NCBI GenBank assembly: GCA_977020255.1
Contig: CDROCS010000253.1
Location: forward strand, 1,240,001 to 1,304,000
Reading direction: 5' to 3'
Length of the DNA stretch: 64,000 bases
DNA from: Obrimoposthia wandeli
Lineage: Eukaryota
A program made the position numbers and the translations under genes. Positions 10,260-34,879 of the stretch are shown here, in pieces (the first letter of the stretch is position 1; the number at the start of each line of letters is the position of its first letter). The notes under the pieces were generated by a model. It was not told the DNA's origin. It saw only the letters and a program-made list of their open reading frames with translations, and did not search any database.

Positions 10260-10868
10260 CTAGTCCTTTCCGTTGTTTAATGATTGAGGTTTAGTTGCTT
10301 TCGAGTGGGCTTTGGCGGCTAACATAGCGCGGTAGTCTTTTACGGTTTGCAGTAGGAAGAAAAATACCATCATCGCAAAACCAAAGATCATACTGCCACT
10401 CCATAATCCTTTAGGCCATTGTAGATAGAGACTCATTCGTCCTTTATCAATGACAAATAGTCCGTATTTAGTTGCATAATAGCCAAAAACACAGGCGGCA
10501 ATGGTACAAATAATAGATACAATAAAGCGGATCATCTCAATTTTAAATGGGTCACTGACAACGAGGCTGACGATACCACCGTGAATATGTGCCCGCTGCT
10601 TAGTTGCATAGCCCATACCGAGAAAATAGATCCATACCGCCATTAAAATTGCAGCTTCTTCTATTCCCGCAAAAGGAGAATCGAGCGCATAACGCATGAT
10701 GACTTGGGTGAACATTAATATGGCGAGTCCAAGGCCGCTAAAAATCATCAGTGCTTTGAGGGAGAAGTCGAGCAAATCTCCAATCTGCTGAAGTACATCT
10801 TTTTTTACTTTTTCTGGTAAATCAACATGCTGTGGCTGACTACCGGATTTTAATTTACTGGTATTCAT
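10260..10868 (-). CDS. dctQ: TRAP transporter small permease
   Basis: 4 TM segments, QVIMRY, EEAA..MAVW..FLG...A.....HI; sits between dctP and dctM. Confidence 0.9.
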   Translation of the reverse strand: MNTSKLKSGSQPQHVDLPEKVKKDVLQQIGDLLDFSLKALMIFSGLGLAILMFTQVIMRYALDSPFAGIEEAAILMAVWIYFLGMGYATKQRAHIHGGIVSLVVSDPFKIEMIRFIVSIICTIAACVFGYYATKYGLFVIDKGRMSLYLQWPKGLWSGSMIFGFAMMVFFFLLQTVKDYRAMLAAKAHSKATKPQSLNNGKD

Positions 10869-26727: not shown

Positions 26728-26919
26728 AGGTATCTCATTAGATTGAAGGGTAAAAACTGAGTGTTATTTTACCCTTCAAGCGTGAGATAGCCAGTAACTT
26801 ATGCCCTTATTGCTTTAACAAAATAGTTGTGCGAATGTTAGTTACTAGTTTACTTGGGCTTATTTTTAACTGTTTTTTTATGTAAATATTAATGTAGATT
26901 TAATCAAAAGGAAAATATT

Positions 26920-27489
26920 ATGAATACACCAGAAAAATTAGTAACAGAGCTTGTGAAAGAACATGTATGTATCCCTGTGGGCTTAACAAGTAAAGAAAAT
27001 GATGACACTGTTGATACCGTAATTACTTATTTTAGCCTTATACCTTCAATAAAAAAAGATGTGGAGTGGGGAACAACTTTAATACGCACAGGGAGTGAAG
27101 CACTTACTACACCCGAAATAGGTCTTTCAAGTCTTCAATATGAATTTATACCCTTTTTAGGATCAGACCCTAAACAAAAGTTTTTAGAGTCTTATCAAAA
27201 GGCTGTACTTATTGTTGATTTACCAGTGGAAACTACTGAAGGTCAGTGGACTTTTGCTGATCCTGGGGTGGTCTTTAATACAAGTCCAACGTCAGCAGAG
27301 TGTGCTGTAGAGCAGGTACTCGCTGATGGGAATACACGTTTGATCTTGACTATAGAAAATGTTGTATCAACAACGTTGTTTCACTTGGATTTTATTTATA
27401 AAGCTTTATTTACTACAGCTGAAGGGGTAACTACGCCTTACACGTCGCAAGATCCTACTCTTGGGATTCGTCGTAGAAAGAAGAATTAA
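26920..27489 (+). CDS. Hypothetical protein, possibly DP-EP (DUF1888)-like
   Basis: 189 aa, acidic, beta-rich looking, C-terminal SQDP plus basic tail; AAGGA upstream. Confidence 0.5.
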   Translation: MNTPEKLVTELVKEHVCIPVGLTSKENDDTVDTVITYFSLIPSIKKDVEWGTTLIRTGSEALTTPEIGLSSLQYEFIPFLGSDPKQKFLESYQKAVLIVDLPVETTEGQWTFADPGVVFNTSPTSAECAVEQVLADGNTRLILTIENVVSTTLFHLDFIYKALFTTAEGVTTPYTSQDPTLGIRRRKKN

Positions 27490-27496
27490 TTTTGAC

Positions 27497-30298
27497 TTAT
27501 AAGTTCAGCTGGCATCGCTTTGAGTTGCCAGCTTTAATCAATAACTGTTGGAAGTCAGTACTGCTACATAGCGAATCAAACCAAGGTAAATTAAACCAAA
27601 CAAAACCGAAATCAGCAGCCAAGGCTTCTTCTACTTGATTAATCGCTGACACTTGCTCACCTAGCTGGCTATAGACTAAGGCTGCGGAAAAAGCTACTTG
27701 TCCATTATTAGGAGCTAATTTTTTTGCTTGGTTGATGGCTTTAATTGCTTGCTTATGTTTGCTTAAGTGAACATAAGCTTGGGCATTTATTAGTAATGCT
27801 TCCAGATCCTGTTGTTGATGGGATAGTTTAATGACCTGCTGATATAGAGAAGTTGCTTGCTCAGTCATTCCTAATATCAGCTTGATATCTGCTAAATTAG
27901 ATATTCTTGTTGGGTGCTTAGGACTATCTTTAACAGCTAATAGCGCCATTCTAAGAGCATCTTGATAACGACCGGCGAGTGTATAGGCCAATCCTAAACT
28001 ATCTAGATCACTGCTTTGCGGATTTACCTCAATGATAGCTTCATACATTGCAATCGCCTGTTTTAGGTCACCTTCAGACAAATATATATCGGCTAATAGC
28101 TTTTTGGCTTCATAGTCTTTTGGTATGGTTTTTAGTAATATTTTAAGGGGGCGTTTAGCGTTGGTAAAATCACTTAACCAGTAATAACTTAATGCTAAGT
28201 TATATAAAATATTTGTACTAGGCCGTAGGGTCAATATGGATTGATAATTTGAGACCGCTTGTAATAATTCATTACTGTCCATATGTAATGCAGCTTGCAA
28301 CTCTAATTGAGTCGATTCATCTATGCCGTGCTGTATAGCAATGTTTAATTGTTTTTTCGCTTGAGCAAAGTCTCTTACAGAGAGTGAAATCCAGAATTCA
28401 TCGATGGCTTGGAAAATACTGTATTTATAGTCTGGCGGTGCCAGTGATAATACTTTTCTTGCTTGGTTTGCGTACTTTATTTCGTTAGTTTTGTAGTATA
28501 ATTCAACAGCAGTTTTTCTATATAAAGCATAAGCGCTATATAAGTAAGGCGAACTGGTGATAATATCTTGTAATTGCTTTAAGGTATCGTCATCACTGCG
28601 ACCTTGCAACAAAACGCTATGATAAAGCTTGGCAAAAACAAGGTAATCTTGCTGTTTAACCGACTGCTCTGTTAAATGTTTTTTATTATACTGTGGGTAA
28701 ATTCCGGCAAAATAAGATTGAGTGATTTGCTTGATATCATAATAATTTTCTACTTGGCTTGGCCATTTTTTCTGTGTTAACACGGTCCATTTTTTTATTA
28801 CTATTTCTACGCCATTTTCACTACTGCCGTTTATATTTTCGTTAGAGGTTAAACGCGACAAAGTAACATCACATTTAACGTTATTACAGTCAAGCTGGGT
28901 GGTGATAATATCGCTAGCACCCGTCGCAGCAGCTATGTTAGCAATGGAGATAGTTTCCCCTGTTGAATTTTTACTGACTTCGGTAACTTCACGACGAGAA
29001 ATTAACCTTAAACCTTTGGTATTAATAATGCTCTGGCGAATGGCATCATCTAGAGTGGCAGTGACTAAGTCTTTCTGCATATCAGCAATAGGCTTATCAG
29101 GATTCTTATGAGTAACTGTTGCTGGTAATACCACGATATATCGAACGGGTAATTCTGCTGGTGAAAATAGTTCATCACGATAAAAACCAGCGATAACCAT
29201 AAGGGTTGTGAACAAAGCTAAGGTGACAAAAACAATGTTTCTTCGCTGATGTTCGTGATTAGCATTGCGGTTAGTATTGGTAGATGTTAGTCCCGCCGCA
29301 AGTTCTGCTGATAACTCTGTAGTTAATGGCTGAGTATCTTCAGCTAAAATTTCTTGTTGGCTAAGGTGTTTAGTGATTTGTTCAAATTGGTCAGTGACCC
29401 ACTGGCTAGATTGCGGACGATGTTCTACTTGGTTAGCTAACAGCTGATTGAGTAAAGCTATTAGCTCACGTGGTAATCGTGGCACGATATCTTGCGCTTG
29501 TTGGCATTGTGCTTTTAGAATTTTTTGAGCAGTTTGACTGGCTGAATCACTGGCAAAAGGATGTTGCCCGCTTATTAGCTGAAAAGCAATGATGCCTAAA
29601 GAAAATAAGTCGCTACGAAAATCAATTGCTTGAATCGTGGCATTGGGCAGAGCATTGTTAAGTTGCTCAGGAGACATGGCCGTTTGGCTGCCAAAACTTT
29701 GTGAGTTATTTTCTGATGCTGAACTAGTCTCAGCCTTAGTGAGTTTTGCTATGCCGAAATCAACAATTTTAACGCCGCCATGCTGATCAATGATGATGTT
29801 GCTCGGTTTTAAATCGCAATGCACAATACCGTGGTTATGTGCGGCGGTTAACCCCTTGCTAATTTGACTAATAATGGCAAGTTTTTGCGTGAGTGTAACA
29901 ATGTGCTCTTGTTGATAATTTTGTAGCGTTTTACCGTCTAGGTATTCCATTATCAAGGAAATTTGCTGATCTTGTTGAGTAATGTCGTAAATTTGTACTA
30001 TGTTGGCATGGTTAAGCTTGGCAAGTAATCTTGCTTCATGCAAAGCGGTTGCTATGGCTTGCGTATCAGCCGAGCTATTTTTTTTGTTATGTTCACTGCC
30101 ACTAGTGCTTTTATTAATACCTTCAGGCGTAGGGGCATTAATCGCTAACTCAGGTTTTAGTGTCTTTATTGCCACAGTGCGGTGCAAGCGTTGATCTTCT
30201 GCCAGATATATTTCACCCATACCACCTTGGTTGAGCAATTTAATTATTTTGTAATGGCTGGGGAGTTTAGCTTGTACGGCTTGAGTTAACGCTGGCAA
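27497..30298 (-). CDS. Membrane-anchored Hanks-type Ser/Thr kinase with TPR-rich C-terminus
   Basis: QGGMGEIY, VAIK, HCDLKPSN, DFG, MSPEQ, DLFSLG; one TM (IVFVTLALFTTLMVIAGFY); TPR-like helical repeats. Confidence 0.92.
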   Translation of the reverse strand: MPALTQAVQAKLPSHYKIIKLLNQGGMGEIYLAEDQRLHRTVAIKTLKPELAINAPTPEGINKSTSGSEHNKKNSSADTQAIATALHEARLLAKLNHANIVQIYDITQQDQQISLIMEYLDGKTLQNYQQEHIVTLTQKLAIISQISKGLTAAHNHGIVHCDLKPSNIIIDQHGGVKIVDFGIAKLTKAETSSASENNSQSFGSQTAMSPEQLNNALPNATIQAIDFRSDLFSLGIIAFQLISGQHPFASDSASQTAQKILKAQCQQAQDIVPRLPRELIALLNQLLANQVEHRPQSSQWVTDQFEQITKHLSQQEILAEDTQPLTTELSAELAAGLTSTNTNRNANHEHQRRNIVFVTLALFTTLMVIAGFYRDELFSPAELPVRYIVVLPATVTHKNPDKPIADMQKDLVTATLDDAIRQSIINTKGLRLISRREVTEVSKNSTGETISIANIAAATGASDIITTQLDCNNVKCDVTLSRLTSNENINGSSENGVEIVIKKWTVLTQKKWPSQVENYYDIKQITQSYFAGIYPQYNKKHLTEQSVKQQDYLVFAKLYHSVLLQGRSDDDTLKQLQDIITSSPYLYSAYALYRKTAVELYYKTNEIKYANQARKVLSLAPPDYKYSIFQAIDEFWISLSVRDFAQAKKQLNIAIQHGIDESTQLELQAALHMDSNELLQAVSNYQSILTLRPSTNILYNLALSYYWLSDFTNAKRPLKILLKTIPKDYEAKKLLADIYLSEGDLKQAIAMYEAIIEVNPQSSDLDSLGLAYTLAGRYQDALRMALLAVKDSPKHPTRISNLADIKLILGMTEQATSLYQQVIKLSHQQQDLEALLINAQAYVHLSKHKQAIKAINQAKKLAPNNGQVAFSAALVYSQLGEQVSAINQVEEALAADFGFVWFNLPWFDSLCSSTDFQQLLIKAGNSKRCQLNL

Positions 30299-30299
30299 A

Positions 30300-31352
30300 T
30301 TATGAGACTACTTTATTAGGTGGAACGTTAGGTGGTAAAACAGCCTGTTGTGGAATTGAAAGTTTTGTTTGCACAAGTGAACTTTCTAATTGATGGCCCT
30401 TATAGATTTCAAACGCGGGGCAGGCGAACCGTACTTGACGTAATTGTCGTTCTATTACATTGTCGGCATTATGCACGTTGGTCAACATGTCTGCAAACTG
30501 TTTACGGCTACGGTGAATTTGAATGTTCAGATGCGCCATATCTACGCCTAAATCTCTGAGTAAACGATCGGTGTTTACCCAACCTTGCTCAGTACTCTGC
30601 AAACCTTTTTCGGCATCTTCCACTCTATATCTGGCTAAACTCAAGGTTAAATAATGATGGCTACGCGTATGTAAATTGGTGATTTCTTGTGGTGATCTTA
30701 CTTTTAGTTTAGTGATTTCTTCGTTTAAGCTGAGTTCAAAAATACAGTATAAATCTTCAATCTCAAGCTGAGGTGAAGCGCTTAGCTCTGTGCTGTCCTC
30801 TAAATGGCTTAATTGTAATTTCCAGCGCTGATTGCTGAATTCAATTACATCATTTTCTTGTAGTAAACGCGCCTCTATGTGAGGTTCATTAACATACTCT
30901 ATATACCATTGGCCGCTCAACAGATTCGAAATTAGGGCTATTTCTGGCGATTCATCATTGGGTAATAAATGGTAGTGCTGTAATGTTATAGCAGTTTGCG
31001 CAGCATCATGTTGTTTAGCGTTGCTGTGAGTAATAGGTAGTAACATATCAGTAGGAGGACTTAAATCCTCAACCTGAAAACTAAGCTGTTCCTTATCAGA
31101 AAACTGTATGACGTCGCCAATTTTTAAGAACATAGGCTCTTCTTTAGTAAGTCTATGCTGATTAAGCCAAGTACCATTGCTGCTTAAATCTCGAATGGTC
31201 CAGTGGTCATTTTTCCATTCGACCACTGCATGCATTTTAGAAATACAGGGGTTGGTTATTAATGTGTCTACCGAATAAGCGAAACGACCGAAGCTATGGT
31301 GGGCATATAAATAGCAGCGATTTTGTGTTTGATGATTGGATAGATAAGCCAT
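30300..31352 (-). CDS. FHA-domain protein with putative C-terminal winged-helix domain
   Basis: FGR...ISKMHA...DLSSNGTWLN (FHA); C-terminal GWV....L.RDLGVD..HLNIQIHRSRKQF; 1 nt from the kinase start. Confidence 0.82.
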   Translation of the reverse strand: MAYLSNHQTQNRCYLYAHHSFGRFAYSVDTLITNPCISKMHAVVEWKNDHWTIRDLSSNGTWLNQHRLTKEEPMFLKIGDVIQFSDKEQLSFQVEDLSPPTDMLLPITHSNAKQHDAAQTAITLQHYHLLPNDESPEIALISNLLSGQWYIEYVNEPHIEARLLQENDVIEFSNQRWKLQLSHLEDSTELSASPQLEIEDLYCIFELSLNEEITKLKVRSPQEITNLHTRSHHYLTLSLARYRVEDAEKGLQSTEQGWVNTDRLLRDLGVDMAHLNIQIHRSRKQFADMLTNVHNADNVIERQLRQVRFACPAFEIYKGHQLESSLVQTKLSIPQQAVLPPNVPPNKVVS

Positions 31353-31599
31353 AATAAAAACCTAATGAGCAAGTGTTCAAGAATCTTGTTTTCTTATTAA
31401 TAGAGTAGCCGTTCTTAATGGTACTGTCTAGCCGTTTAATATTAATGGGCCTGTTTATCCTTGACGCTCGTTAACCTTTCTAAGTTATTAACTTTATTAT
31501 CTTTTTAGTTAGCGGTAATACGATGTAATATTTTTTTATCAGTGAACAAACTAAGCTTGATCATCAAGATAGGCAACAAGGTTAACAGGGAGTGACAAG

Positions 31600-32556
31600 G
31601 TGCTGATTAACAATATAACTGATATTAATGCTGAAATGACCAACAATAGTACCTTAACCTCCAAGCTGATTAACTATGGTAGTGATCACCCCTTATGGTT
31701 AAACATCGTAATAAAAAAACATGCCCTCGAACGAGTATGTTTTGCCTTAATTAATCGCTTGCAAACCAGTATGGAACCTGAAGTATCATTATCAATATTT
31801 CGTCAAGAAATAGACAAGTATTTACCTATAAGTGACGTGACTTTTTGTGATGAAGTTAAACGTTGTGATCATTCTGTTTCAACTCAGCAGGGCTATTGCA
31901 TCAGTCAACGATTAGCGGTGGAGGGTAGTGCCATAGGTTGTTTAAAATGTTACTTTGTCAAAAAACCTACATTAGCACAAGTAAAGTTGCTGAAACATCT
32001 AGCGAAAGTATTTAGCTATCCTTTAAGTAATGCTATTCAATATCAACAAATAAAATCTATGGCGTTAACTGATACTTTAACGGGGTTGGCAAACCGTAAT
32101 CAGTTTGAAAAAAAATACCACATGTTAGTGGATAGCTGCCTTAAAAGGCAGAGTAATTTTTCATTATTAATAATAGATCTGGATGGCTTTAAATATATCA
32201 ATGATCAGTTCGGTCACCAAACCGGTGATTTAGTGCTCAGTGAATTTGCGAAATTATTGTTAGCTTGTTGTCGTTATGAAGACGAGGTATTTCGATTTGG
32301 TGGTGATGAATTTATCATTTTATTGAACGATGCTAGATTAGTTGCTGTTCCTGACATAGCTAAGCGTATCAAAAGCCAGATGACTAATTGTCCATTTCTT
32401 AATCGCTTTAGTTTGTCTTGTAGTATTGGTAGCGCACTCTATCAAAAGTATGATGAGCCAAAACAGCTCTTTGGTCGTGCTGATGAAGCATTATATCGAG
32501 CCAAAGGAAAAGGAAAAAATTGTTTGGAAATGTCACCTTGTAGTGAGAAGAATTAA
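31600..32556 (+). CDS. Diguanylate cyclase
   Basis: TDTLTGLANR, IDLDGFKYIND.FGHQTGD, FRFGGDEF intact, ADEALYRAK. Confidence 0.93.
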   Translation: MLINNITDINAEMTNNSTLTSKLINYGSDHPLWLNIVIKKHALERVCFALINRLQTSMEPEVSLSIFRQEIDKYLPISDVTFCDEVKRCDHSVSTQQGYCISQRLAVEGSAIGCLKCYFVKKPTLAQVKLLKHLAKVFSYPLSNAIQYQQIKSMALTDTLTGLANRNQFEKKYHMLVDSCLKRQSNFSLLIIDLDGFKYINDQFGHQTGDLVLSEFAKLLLACCRYEDEVFRFGGDEFIILLNDARLVAVPDIAKRIKSQMTNCPFLNRFSLSCSIGSALYQKYDEPKQLFGRADEALYRAKGKGKNCLEMSPCSEKN

Positions 32557-32779: not shown

Positions 32780-32903
32780 ACTTCTTTTGCTATCATAGGG
32801 TATGACGATATTTTTTAACCATGTTAACTTCATAAAAAGCATCATATCCTCTTATTTATCATCAATATAATCAGTAAGTCTTTAATAGAACTTGGAATGT
32901 AAA

Positions 32904-33224
32904 ATGTCTTTTCTTATTCATCAATTTAATTTTACCAACCCCCGTTGGGCTGTTTTTTCTCGAATATTGGCAGCCATTTTTGGCGGGTATGCTTTAGCAA
33001 CCTCTAGTTCTCTTTTTATTGGCCAATTATTATTAACTAGTGTGGGCAAATATCAAGCTATTCATATTGGCTTATTGCTCTCTTTTCTTGTGTACGCTTG
33101 TGCCGCCATGTGGGTATTTTCAGTATCAAGTGCCAATAAAGCGTGGTTAGGGCTAATCAAACTTAATGTTGGCTTTGTTGTAGGAACCTGGTTATTACTG
33201 CAGCTTAATGGTGCGACTAGCTAA
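32904..33224 (+). CDS. DUF3649-like small membrane protein
   Basis: SRILAAIFGGYALA, LLSFLVYACAAMWVF, AW.GL; first gene of the PepSY operon. Confidence 0.75.
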   Translation: MSFLIHQFNFTNPRWAVFSRILAAIFGGYALATSSSLFIGQLLLTSVGKYQAIHIGLLLSFLVYACAAMWVFSVSSANKAWLGLIKLNVGFVVGTWLLLQLNGATS

Positions 33225-34879
33225 TGAAAGATAACTTTAGACAATCAATGAAGTGGTTTCATACTTGGGTTGGCCTTATTGTTGGCTGGATCTTATTTTT
33301 CATGTTTTTAACGGGTACGCTCGGTTATTTCTATCATGAAATTACCCGTTGGATGGAACCGGAAAGACCATTTATTGAGCATAACATCAGTAATGAACAA
33401 TTAATTAATATTGCTCAAACATACCTGAAAAAAAATGCTCAGGGCGTTGATGAATGGGATATTAAGTTACCTAATGTTCGTAATCAAAACCTACGAGTCG
33501 GTTGGCGCCATGTACCAGAAGAGGGTAAAAAACGTGGTCAATATAAAACAAAAGTATTAAATATAACGACAGGCGAAAAAGTTGAGAGTCGTGCAACAGG
33601 TGGAGGCCGATTACTCTATAGAATGCATTATCGTTTGCATTATTTATCAACCAAAATCAGTTATTGGATTGTTGGTTTCTGTGCCATGTTAATGCTGTTG
33701 GCTGTGATCACCGGTGTTGTGATACATAAGAAAATATTCACCGACTTTTTTACTTTTAGAGCAAAAAAAGGCTTACCTGGCTGGTTAGATATTCACAATG
33801 TACTAAGTGTTATTGCGCTGCCATTTCACTTTATGATCACTTACAGTGGTTTACTTTTTTTCCTTTTTACCTACATGGCGTTAAGTACTAATTTACAAAC
33901 CAATGAAGATGAATATAGTGAAATGCGCACAGAAATATACCCACGGACAGCGTATTTAGATAGTGCTAATCAACCAGCAGACATGCTGGATATTTCATCG
34001 TTATACCAACAAGCAAAAAATAGCTGGAAAGCAGATGAACTAAGCCATATAGAAATGTATGCTGCTGATGATATTAATGCTCAGGTAGTCTTTGTTCGTC
34101 ACGAAACGGATATTACTTATAACCCGGATGATGAAGTTACTGTTAGTGCAGTTACCGGTGATGTTATAACGAAACCAACAAAACAGTACACCGCCGCGGG
34201 TATGATTCATAATGGCTTCTTCTCTTTGCATGAAGGCCAGTTCGCCGGACCTATTGCGCGTTGGATATACTTTTTCACTGGTCTTATTGGTACTGCAATG
34301 ATTGCCTCCGGATTAATTTTGTGGACAACGAAACGTAAACCTCAACAAATGAAGAAACCAAATGGACCTGATTTTGGTTACCGACTAGTTGAGCAACTCA
34401 ATATTGGTACTATTGTCGGTTTACCTATCGCTATTTGCATGTATTTCTATGCTAATCGGTTATTACCAGTAGATATGGTCGAGCGCGTAAACTGGGAAGC
34501 CAATGTGATGTTTATCAGTTGGGCAGTGCTATTAATATATCCGGCATTTCGTCCCGCTTATAAGGCGTGGCCTGAGCAATTACAACTTGCGGCATTAGCT
34601 TATATGACGCTACCGCTAGTGAATATATTAACCACAGATAAACACCTCATTAATAGTGTGTCGAATCAGGATTGGGGTCTTGCTGCTTTTGATATGATCT
34701 TTTTGGTTATTGGTTGTTGTTTTGCTTTTTCAGCCTATAAATATAAGATACTTCAGGTTGATAAAAAATTTAGGAAACCGACAATAAGGCAAGCTGCTAA
34801 ACAAGAAGAAAAACAAAGTGAAGTATTCGGAAATGAAGCCTTATTGAACGTACCAAAAGTAAGTAAGGGCAATAGTTAA
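33224..34879 (+). CDS. PepSY-associated TM protein (iron-uptake reductase-like)
   Basis: WFHTWVGL, YRMHY.LH, WLDIHN, LHEGQFAG His motifs. Confidence 0.9.
   Translation: MKDNFRQSMKWFHTWVGLIVGWILFFMFLTGTLGYFYHEITRWMEPERPFIEHNISNEQLINIAQTYLKKNAQGVDEWDIKLPNVRNQNLRVGWRHVPEEGKKRGQYKTKVLNITTGEKVESRATGGGRLLYRMHYRLHYLSTKISYWIVGFCAMLMLLAVITGVVIHKKIFTDFFTFRAKKGLPGWLDIHNVLSVIALPFHFMITYSGLLFFLFTYMALSTNLQTNEDEYSEMRTEIYPRTAYLDSANQPADMLDISSLYQQAKNSWKADELSHIEMYAADDINAQVVFVRHETDITYNPDDEVTVSAVTGDVITKPTKQYTAAGMIHNGFFSLHEGQFAGPIARWIYFFTGLIGTAMIASGLILWTTKRKPQQMKKPNGPDFGYRLVEQLNIGTIVGLPIAICMYFYANRLLPVDMVERVNWEANVMFISWAVLLIYPAFRPAYKAWPEQLQLAALAYMTLPLVNILTTDKHLINSVSNQDWGLAAFDMIFLVIGCCFAFSAYKYKILQVDKKFRKPTIRQAAKQEEKQSEVFGNEALLNVPKVSKGNS

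Follow-up and report, generated by a model that had tools for sequence, protein, structure and literature searches.

A conserved FHA regulator, receptor Ser/Thr kinase and DP-EP-related protein module in marine Alteromonadales and Vibrionales

Three genes and their products

A 64,000-nucleotide (nt) stretch of DNA, here called the window, from the Obrimoposthia wandeli assembly GCA_977020255.1 (positions 1,240,001 to 1,304,000 of contig CDROCS010000253.1, hereafter C253) contains three tightly packed genes. These encode a regulator with an FHA domain, a Hanks-type Ser/Thr kinase with a TPR region and, on the opposite strand, a 189-amino acid (aa) protein related to the self-cleaving DP-EP proteins (DUF1888, PF08985). 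The three open reading frames (ORFs), the single nt that separates the FHA gene stop from the kinase start and the 7-nt gap on which the kinase gene and the small gene converge, all reported in the initial annotation of this stretch, were confirmed from the ORFs and their stop codons (Table 1). Together they form a real, conserved and uncharacterised signalling module, in which the regulator joins an FHA domain and a beta domain to what is predicted to be an OmpR-like winged helix. No paper describing this module was found in the literature.

The assembly totals 1.35 Gb over 6912 contigs, and its OmpR-type genes (more than 150) and TssC genes (14) are scattered among many of these. The assembly is metagenome-like, behaving either as a metagenome or as a host plus its microbiome. 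Since the assembly mixes organisms, the 4.68-Mb contig C253, whose closest relatives are Colwellia, was treated alone as the genome to which the module belongs.

Table 1. Positions of the module genes, their domains and associated features (window numbering unless a locus or contig is named)
Feature	Position	Strand	Basis or remark
DP-EP-related gene, 189 aa	26920-27489	+	ORF list
Gap between convergent stop codons, 7 nt	27490-27496	.	DP-EP-related stop 27487-27489, kinase stop 27497-27499
Kinase-TPR gene, 933 aa, TTG start	27497-30298	-	ORF list
Periplasmic TPR array, kinase residues ~570-933, conserved C-terminal Cys pair	27500-28588	-	TPR models; conservation, 63 kinases
Membrane-proximal periplasmic domain, kinase residues 376-570, conserved C-x4-C	28589-29173	-	Conservation; language-model lead
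Single transmembrane helix, kinase residues 353-374	29177-29242	-	Hydropathy scan
Thr322 codon, juxtamembrane linker, candidate FHA docking site	29333-29335	-	Conservation, 63 kinases
Hanks-type Ser/Thr kinase domain, residues 16-304	29387-30253	-	PF00069 E 1e-47
FHA/winged-helix regulator gene, 350 aa	30300-31352	-	ORF list
Predicted divergent OmpR/PhoB-type winged helix, regulator residues 196-335	30348-30767	-	AlphaFold2 model and VIA-align
All-beta middle domain, regulator residues 107-195	30768-31034	-	Full-length AlphaFold2 model; conserved in alignment A1
FHA domain, regulator residues 1-106	31035-31352	-	PF00498 E 1e-17
Predicted operator, direct repeat with half-sites 10 bp apart	31515-31530	-	Sole exact copy in 64 kb
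Divergent GGDEF diguanylate cyclase gene	31600-32556	+	PF00990 E 7e-42
Paralogous FHA/winged-helix and kinase-TPR pair, contig C253	L007:2968-7071 = C253:1844967-1849070		541 kb beyond the window

The PF00498 match in the regulator covers residues 20-84 and scores 64.6 bits against a curated cut-off of 20.7. Among 44 homologues the residues that bind phosphothreonine (pThr) are invariant at Gly22-Arg23, His41 and Asn59-Gly60, and Ser38 is kept in at least 90%. The C-terminal half of the protein is conserved as strongly as the FHA domain in the alignment of homologues. Homologues of the whole regulator are common in Colwellia, Pseudoalteromonas, Thalassomonas, Shewanella, Vibrio and Photobacterium, where they are annotated solely as FHA proteins.

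The full-length AlphaFold2 model (pLDDT 89.7, pTM 0.80) has three parts: the FHA domain, a beta middle domain and a C-terminal domain. Structure searches with this model, by Foldseek and VIA-align, returned FHA domains only, the best structural match to the FHA part being that of EmbR (VIA-align Z 16.6). Because FHA matches took up these searches, the C-terminus was folded again on its own. The isolated domain is modelled (pLDDT 93.4, pTM 0.87) as a three-stranded sheet, three helices, a wing hairpin and an extra hairpin. When it was compared with 48,161 chains by VIA-align, rows 1-18 contained OmpR/PhoB-type DNA-binding domains without exception (Z 9.1 to 6.7), the top matches covering residues 6-117 of the 140-residue model. 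The best match was BaeR (Z 9.1 over 93 residues, 2.7 Å), with further matches to GlnR (Z 8.8), CadC (8.4), DrrD (8.0) and ToxR (7.4). CpxR, VanR, AdeR, PrrA, PmrA, TcpP, PhoP and KdpE were also among the leading rows, and OmpR itself (Z 6.4), the N-terminal domain of EmbR (5.9) and AfsR (5.7) came lower. These matches are uniform and span the whole domain, though sequence models are silent, and the winged helix was therefore called by fold. What had been described from the sequence as a helix-turn-helix-like segment folds confidently in the model as a DNA-binding domain, and by this fold it is a divergent OmpR/PhoB-type winged helix that is not a member of Pfam Trans_reg_C.

The second protein is a catalytically intact, receptor-type Hanks kinase with a cytoplasmic kinase domain, one transmembrane (TM) helix and a periplasmic part in which a possibly TolB_N-like domain precedes the TPRs. 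This agrees with the initial annotation, which had read it as an intact Hanks kinase with one TM segment and a long TPR region. The PF00069 match scores 163 bits, and the G-loop, VAIK Lys45, HCDLKxxN, DFG and SPE motifs are conserved among 63 kinase relatives; the catalytic loop reads His-Cys-Asp, and the kinase is therefore non-RD. The hydropathy scan found one TM segment in the kinase and none in the regulator or the 189-aa protein, and an Arg-Arg pair lies on the N-terminal, cytoplasmic side of the TM helix. On the periplasmic side two Cys pairs are kept across the 63 kinases, and Pfam TPR models (TPR_1/2/8/14/16/19) match at residues ~570-900. Residues 376-570 have no Pfam match; a protein-language-model look-up suggests, as a lead only, that this membrane-proximal domain is possibly TolB_N/FlgO/LpoB-like.

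How might the kinase and the regulator meet? Within a juxtamembrane linker that is otherwise variable, all 63 kinases have Thr322, in the motif T-x-P-[L/I/V/F], and the residue at +3 is hydrophobic in 58 of them. FHA domains are readers of pThr with a preference at the +3 position. An invariant Thr followed by a hydrophobic +3 residue, taken with that preference, makes Thr322 the most likely FHA docking site on the kinase.

The third protein ends, as first noticed and as confirmed by translation, in SQDP and a basic tail of 11 residues, so that Asp178-Pro179 lies 11 residues from the C-terminus. Neither this protein nor its subfamily has a signal peptide or a TM segment. The 25-sequence family alignment (A3) has the C-terminal pattern S-Q-D-P-x-I-x-V-R-R, and W110, G116, D178 and P179 are the same in every sequence. 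The 189-aa protein itself has no match to PF08985.17 (E up to 10) and no direct match in Pfam or NCBIfam; a word-based homologue search with it gave two matches, and PDB sequence searches with it, with a Pseudoalteromonas family member and with the A3 profile found no solved relative. Its relatives provide the link to DP-EP, for 11 of the 25 subfamily members match PF08985.17 (best E 3.5e-5), and relatives at 51-54% identity to the 189-aa protein carry precomputed PF08985.19. The canonical DP-EP proteins of Shewanella are ~125 aa long and end ..SPD116-P117-QIIN.., and hhalign pairs the SQDP of the 189-aa family with their SPDP (P about 0.003). Both have S-x-D-P-x-[IV] about 10 residues from the end. 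The 189-aa protein is ~60 residues longer at the N-terminus, and alignment A3 holds no conserved Glu-Pro motif, which in the canonical members is found as ..NGEPVF... Judged by sequence, it is a divergent, N-terminally extended DP-EP relative in which the DP has been kept and the EP has not. The DP-EP assignment of the initial annotation therefore stands through the relatives' PF08985 matches and the aligned Asp-Pro, and falls short in that PF08985 is not matched by the protein itself.

Cleavage of the Shewanella protein SO1698 reportedly falls at Asp116-Pro117. By analogy, the 189-aa protein would cleave itself at Asp178-Pro179. The initial statement on self-cleavage is backed for one DUF1888 member: SO1698 of S. 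oneidensis is described as an endopeptidase that cleaves itself (PMC11655445, citing Osipiuk et al. 2012 J Biol Chem 287:19452).

Conservation and a predicted operator

A kinase-TPR gene is adjacent in 74 of the 80 loci that encode a relative of the regulator, and in nearly all complete loci a small convergent gene lies at the kinase 3' end, with a gap of -13 to +74 nt that is mostly under 30. By hidden Markov model this small gene is DP-EP-like in at least 37 of the 74 loci. About ten further loci contain weaker variants, all ending D-P-x-[IV]-x-[IV], which followed by a short tail is the ending of all DP-type small proteins. A clade of Colwellia paralogues, amounting to about a quarter of loci, has in place of the DP-EP protein a completely unrelated secreted protein of ~120-130 aa with a conserved Gly-rich C-terminal peptide. 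The reverse search gave the same association: of 301 genomes of the family that were sampled, 25 contain genes matched by the DP-EP-like profile, 28 in total, and all but one of these genes (27) abut such a kinase. In four genomes that were checked whole, the kinase-adjacent copy is the sole DP-EP-like gene. Co-occurrence of the 189-aa gene with the pair is thus borne out in both directions, and the module is a conserved signalling unit of marine Alteromonadales and Vibrionales. Genes in the same position in relatives are 32-56% identical to the 189-aa protein, compared with 65-90% for the regulator, and have precomputed PF08985 assignments.

The paralogous pair on C253 (locus L007) has a regulator 40% identical to that of the window, the same kinase-TPR partner, a convergent small gene and ATTACA direct repeats. 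It differs in that its small gene encodes not a DP-EP-like cytoplasmic protein but a secreted one of 123 aa with a Gly-rich tail, ending ..STFGAIHDGDIMQ. A third FHA/kinase pair, on contig C2432 and possibly from another organism (L006), has a convergent gene of 161 aa (L006:7046-7531) whose product ends ..AWDPQVKVKI. This type of DP variant is found in several Colwellia and Thalassotalea loci and is weakly recognised by the DP-EP-like profile; the L006 protein aligns with the DP-EP-related family at the profile level only. By BLAST, the small ORFs downstream of these two other FHA/kinase pairs had no similarity to the 189-aa protein.

Two variations in the small genes were seen in passing. 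In an Alteromonadaceae metagenome-assembled genome (L164:5891-7132), a single kinase gene has two tandem DP-EP-like genes at its 3' end. In two Colwellia loci (L048:9830-10042 and, in L055, the ORF past the kinase 3' end at 10769) the secreted protein ends in a tandem 11-residue unit, FGGISKGGLMR twice in one locus and FGGFRTGGLMK twice in the other; these C-termini look like a multi-copy pro-peptide.

The intergenic region between the FHA and GGDEF genes is 33% identical overall in an alignment of six orthologous loci and contains one invariant block, AAAAATATTACA-N3-(T)ATTACAG. In the window the direct repeat reads TATTACATCGTATTAC; its distance from the start of the FHA gene, to which it is upstream, is 163-178 nt, and that from the start of the GGDEF gene is 70-85 nt. 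The consensus is TATTACA-N3-TATTAC, with 10-bp phasing. OmpR/PhoB proteins bind tandem direct repeats ~10-11 bp apart.

The density of the repeat was counted as exact ATTAC-N5-ATTAC sites across 75 loci. It is 1.22/kb in the 460 nt around the small-gene start (38 of the 68 loci; 46-fold enriched) and 0.55/kb upstream of the FHA gene (17 loci; 21-fold enriched), compared with 0.026/kb elsewhere. Exact sites mark both promoters, that of the FHA gene and that of the small gene, in the locus of the closest DP-EP relative. The same half-site is carried by the secreted-protein class of module in 14 of 17 loci, and the paralogous module has ATTACA direct repeats upstream of its small gene and an exact ATTACA-N4-ATTACA at L007:7422-7437. 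No repeat sites were found at the canonical Shewanella DP-EP loci. The TATTACA repeat is predicted to be the operator of the regulator. Its placement favours the DP-EP protein as the output in relatives, and the GGDEF gene, which shares the repeat-bearing intergenic region, is a possible second target.

A probable transcriptional relay and its alternatives

What does the module do? It is probably a one-kinase transcriptional relay with the DP-EP-related protein as its dedicated output. The initial annotation had proposed a eukaryote-like one-kinase transcriptional relay in a marine gammaproteobacterium, and the fold of the regulator, the linkage of the genes and a contig free of any type VI secretion system (T6SS) sheath gene support this. 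In such a relay, some periplasmic cue would act on the TPR sensor and activate the kinase, which would autophosphorylate at sites including the juxtamembrane Thr322. The FHA domain would dock on pThr322, and the regulator would be phosphorylated or released. Its winged helix would then bind the direct repeats as a tandem dimer, in the style of OmpR/PhoB, so as to control its own operon; the targets would in relatives include the convergent small gene, and here probably the GGDEF gene that diverges from the FHA gene. The dedicated output would be the DP-EP-related protein, self-cleaving in the manner of SO1698. PP2C phosphatases are encoded elsewhere on contig C253 and could reset the kinase system.

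Several points weigh against this interpretation. For every member of the family it is inferred that the kinase phosphorylates, that the FHA domain docks, that the regulator binds DNA and that the Asp-Pro bond is cleaved. The small gene is convergent rather than co-transcribed, and has an exact site upstream in just the 38 of 68 loci. It is co-occurrence only that assigns the repeat to this regulator. In the DP-EP promoter of the window (26728-26919, 192 nt, next to the HAD gene), the best match to the repeat has 3 mismatches, and with no good copy there the output link is therefore weaker in this genome than in relatives. A complex prediction with kinase residues 1-352, kinase residues 560-933 and the 189-aa partner returned 'no answer' (score 0.00) and counts neither way. 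For the winged helix, the structural match is moderate (Z 6-9), and Foldseek with the isolated C-terminal domain gave nothing below E 0.08. The domain has no Pfam match, including to PF00486 Trans_reg_C (E up to 10), and hhalign of the C-terminus with 25 OmpR-type domains of the same assembly was weak (E 0.03, probability 1.7%), aligning the recognition helix only, to the OmpR 'vdvhIrRLRkkL' segment. Likewise, when a sequence profile of the whole regulator was searched against PDB chains, FHA domains alone were found.

Could the FHA protein be something other than a transcription factor? Its C-terminus would then be a protein-interaction module, the pair would act post-translationally, for example through the GGDEF cyclase and cyclic di-GMP, and the 189-aa gene would be a bystander. 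The silence of the sequence models of DNA-binding domains, the moderate Z scores and the GGDEF gene as divergent neighbour in orthologues all fit this proposal. Yet the structural matches are consistently to OmpR/PhoB DNA-binding domains, a conserved direct repeat of the kind bound by these proteins is present at the module promoters, and the synteny of the GGDEF gene is confined to close orthologues whereas the linkage of the small gene spans genera. We regard it as very unlikely that the pair acts in this way.

If the module is a transcriptional relay, the place of the small protein in it can be considered from gene order. In six loci (L079, L080 and L084-L087) the kinase gene is divergent from the FHA gene and the DP-EP gene is still at the kinase 3' end; when the order changes, the small gene is tied to the kinase gene and not to the FHA gene. 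In L160 and L161 a DP-EP-like gene lies beside the kinase and the FHA gene is not seen nearby. The DP-EP-related protein might therefore be a cytoplasmic partner of the kinase, as substrate, inhibitor or scaffold, with its self-cleavage or self-assembly tuning kinase activity. Having no signal peptide, it would be in the same compartment as the kinase domain, and the canonical Shewanella DP-EP genes also lie beside a TPR-bearing signalling protein. However, the DP-EP-related family has no conserved Thr, so it is not an obvious FHA ligand, and its place is filled in about a quarter of loci by an unrelated secreted protein, a substitution that fits an interchangeable output better. A role as kinase partner is, on this evidence, unlikely.

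The small protein could also be the signal itself. In an autocrine peptide loop it would be exported, and Asp-Pro cleavage would free the basic 11-residue tail as the ligand of the TPR array. TPR arrays commonly bind peptide termini, the paralogous class has a signal-peptide protein with a conserved and sometimes tandemly repeated C-terminal peptide, and all of the DP-type small proteins share the D-P-x-[IV]-x-[IV] ending with its short tail. Against this, the window protein and its whole subfamily are without signal peptide or TM segment, which disfavours a simple role as periplasmic ligand, no exporter is encoded in the module, and the canonical Shewanella DP-EP partner is a cytoplasmic TPR regulator. 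Such a loop is improbable. We give as little credence to a Gram-negative autoinduction circuit, in which the regulator switches on the small gene and its product, a self-cleaved and exported DP-EP protein, feeds back on the TPR sensor. If that were true, DUF1888 self-cleavage would be a step of signal maturation, and receptor Ser/Thr kinases would form a peptide-sensing system parallel to RRNPP in Firmicutes. Unlike RRNPP-like signalling, the module of the window has no secreted pro-peptide gene, the 189-aa protein lacking a signal peptide; the paralogous class does have a secreted small protein.

Most FHA/kinase pairs of Gammaproteobacteria are associated with type VI secretion. The Pfam scan of the window found no T6SS genes among the neighbours, as the initial annotation had said, and TssC/VipB has no match on contig C253, all 14 matches in the assembly being on other contigs. 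Could the pair nevertheless be a detached PpkA/TagH-like regulator of a T6SS encoded elsewhere? The TagH model TIGR03354 does match the regulator (E 3e-10), but at 40.5 bits against a cut-off of 120.25 and over the FHA core only. In addition, the regulator has its predicted winged helix where TagH has a C-terminal region of its own, and a paralogous pair is present on the same contig, with a further related pair on another. These features make a T6SS regulator exceedingly unlikely.

Known systems and the surroundings of the module

Relays from a Hanks kinase to an FHA transcription factor are known mainly from Actinobacteria, as in PknH-EmbR of Mycobacterium tuberculosis, which is comprised of a transmembrane Hanks kinase and an OmpR-type winged-helix/FHA regulator. 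The general plan is the same here, with a transmembrane Hanks kinase predicted to signal to a winged-helix and FHA regulator, and both domains of EmbR have structural counterparts in the regulator (Z 16.6 for the FHA domain, Z 5.9 for the EmbR N-terminal DNA-binding domain against the C-terminal domain). In contrast to EmbR, the FHA domain comes first and the winged helix last, neither Pfam nor the model shows a BTAD or other helical domain, and a beta domain takes the middle position. Outside the FHA domain, the PDB profile search detected no sequence homology to EmbR. The sensor, possibly TolB_N-like followed by TPRs, differs from that of PknH, as do the gammaproteobacterial host and the dedicated convergent small gene.

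The OmpR/PhoB DNA-binding domains (BaeR, CadC, ToxR, TcpP) share with the C-terminal domain a fold of three helices between an N-terminal sheet and a wing hairpin (Z 7-9 over 83-95 aligned residues), and a 10-bp-phased direct repeat such as the predicted operator is typical of the family. Unlike these proteins, the regulator has no receiver domain or Trans_reg_C match, and its input would come through the FHA domain rather than through Asp phosphorylation or a membrane anchor. In Xanthomonas citri, PknS is a transmembrane Hanks kinase with periplasmic TPRs that acts directly on the extracytoplasmic function sigma factor EcfK, with a T6SS as output (PMC13147305). Both systems thus have a gammaproteobacterial TM Hanks kinase with periplasmic TPRs and a dedicated transcription regulator, but EcfK has no FHA domain and its output is a T6SS, whereas here the regulator is an FHA/winged-helix protein and the contig has no T6SS sheath gene. 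The module would work like PknH-EmbR and PknS-EcfK and is a member of neither family.

The canonical DP-EP genes have a neighbourhood of their own. DP-EP is present in 37 of 61 sampled Shewanella genomes, and the canonical genes lie directly downstream of a gene for a ~1090-aa protein with Trans_reg_C, nSTAND1 NTPase and TPR regions (L193:5433-9109, L194:4874-8798, L195:5497-9221) and upstream of a GGDEF gene with a PAS-like sensor. The canonical gene therefore follows a cytoplasmic Trans_reg_C-STAND-TPR regulator, whereas the subfamily of the window abuts a receptor kinase. As canonical and divergent DP-EP genes are both found beside such proteins, DP-EP appears recurrently wired to OmpR-type winged-helix and TPR signalling, which indicates a regulated function and not a housekeeping one. 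A GGDEF neighbour is also shared by the window module and the Shewanella DP-EP genes, but the GGDEF domain is all that they have in common and its recurrence may be chance.

This gives DUF1888/DP-EP self-cleaving proteins their first genomic context, and it defines a stand-alone relay family across the genera listed above for the regulator (Colwellia, Pseudoalteromonas, Thalassomonas, Shewanella, Vibrio and Photobacterium). The 16-bp predicted operator, the invariant candidate docking Thr and the presumed dedicated output gene offer handles on it.

The junction between the kinase gene and the small gene has consequences of its own. The 7-nt gap between the convergent stops leaves no room for a terminator. 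Near-zero spacing, often with overlapping stop codons, is seen both in the window (27490-27496) and at the equivalent junctions of L012-L091; each transcript must therefore end inside the opposite gene or read into it. Mutual antisense or transcriptional interference between the kinase and the small gene is possible. A sigma-70 promoter and terminator scan of the region did not rise above shuffled expectation and was not used.

Next to the FHA gene and divergent from it is the GGDEF cyclase gene; the other neighbours of the module in the window encode, by Pfam, a HAD hydrolase, a PepSY_TM protein, an FAD oxidoreductase and a peroxiredoxin. Synteny of the GGDEF gene is limited to close Colwellia-type orthologues (L009-L014, L172 and L197). 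Downstream of the GGDEF gene (window 32892-34879 and beyond) are a 110-aa ORF with no family match and the PepSY_TM protein; this order is conserved in the Colwellia-type orthologues L009, L011, L012 and L197, and relatives add a DUF3325 gene.

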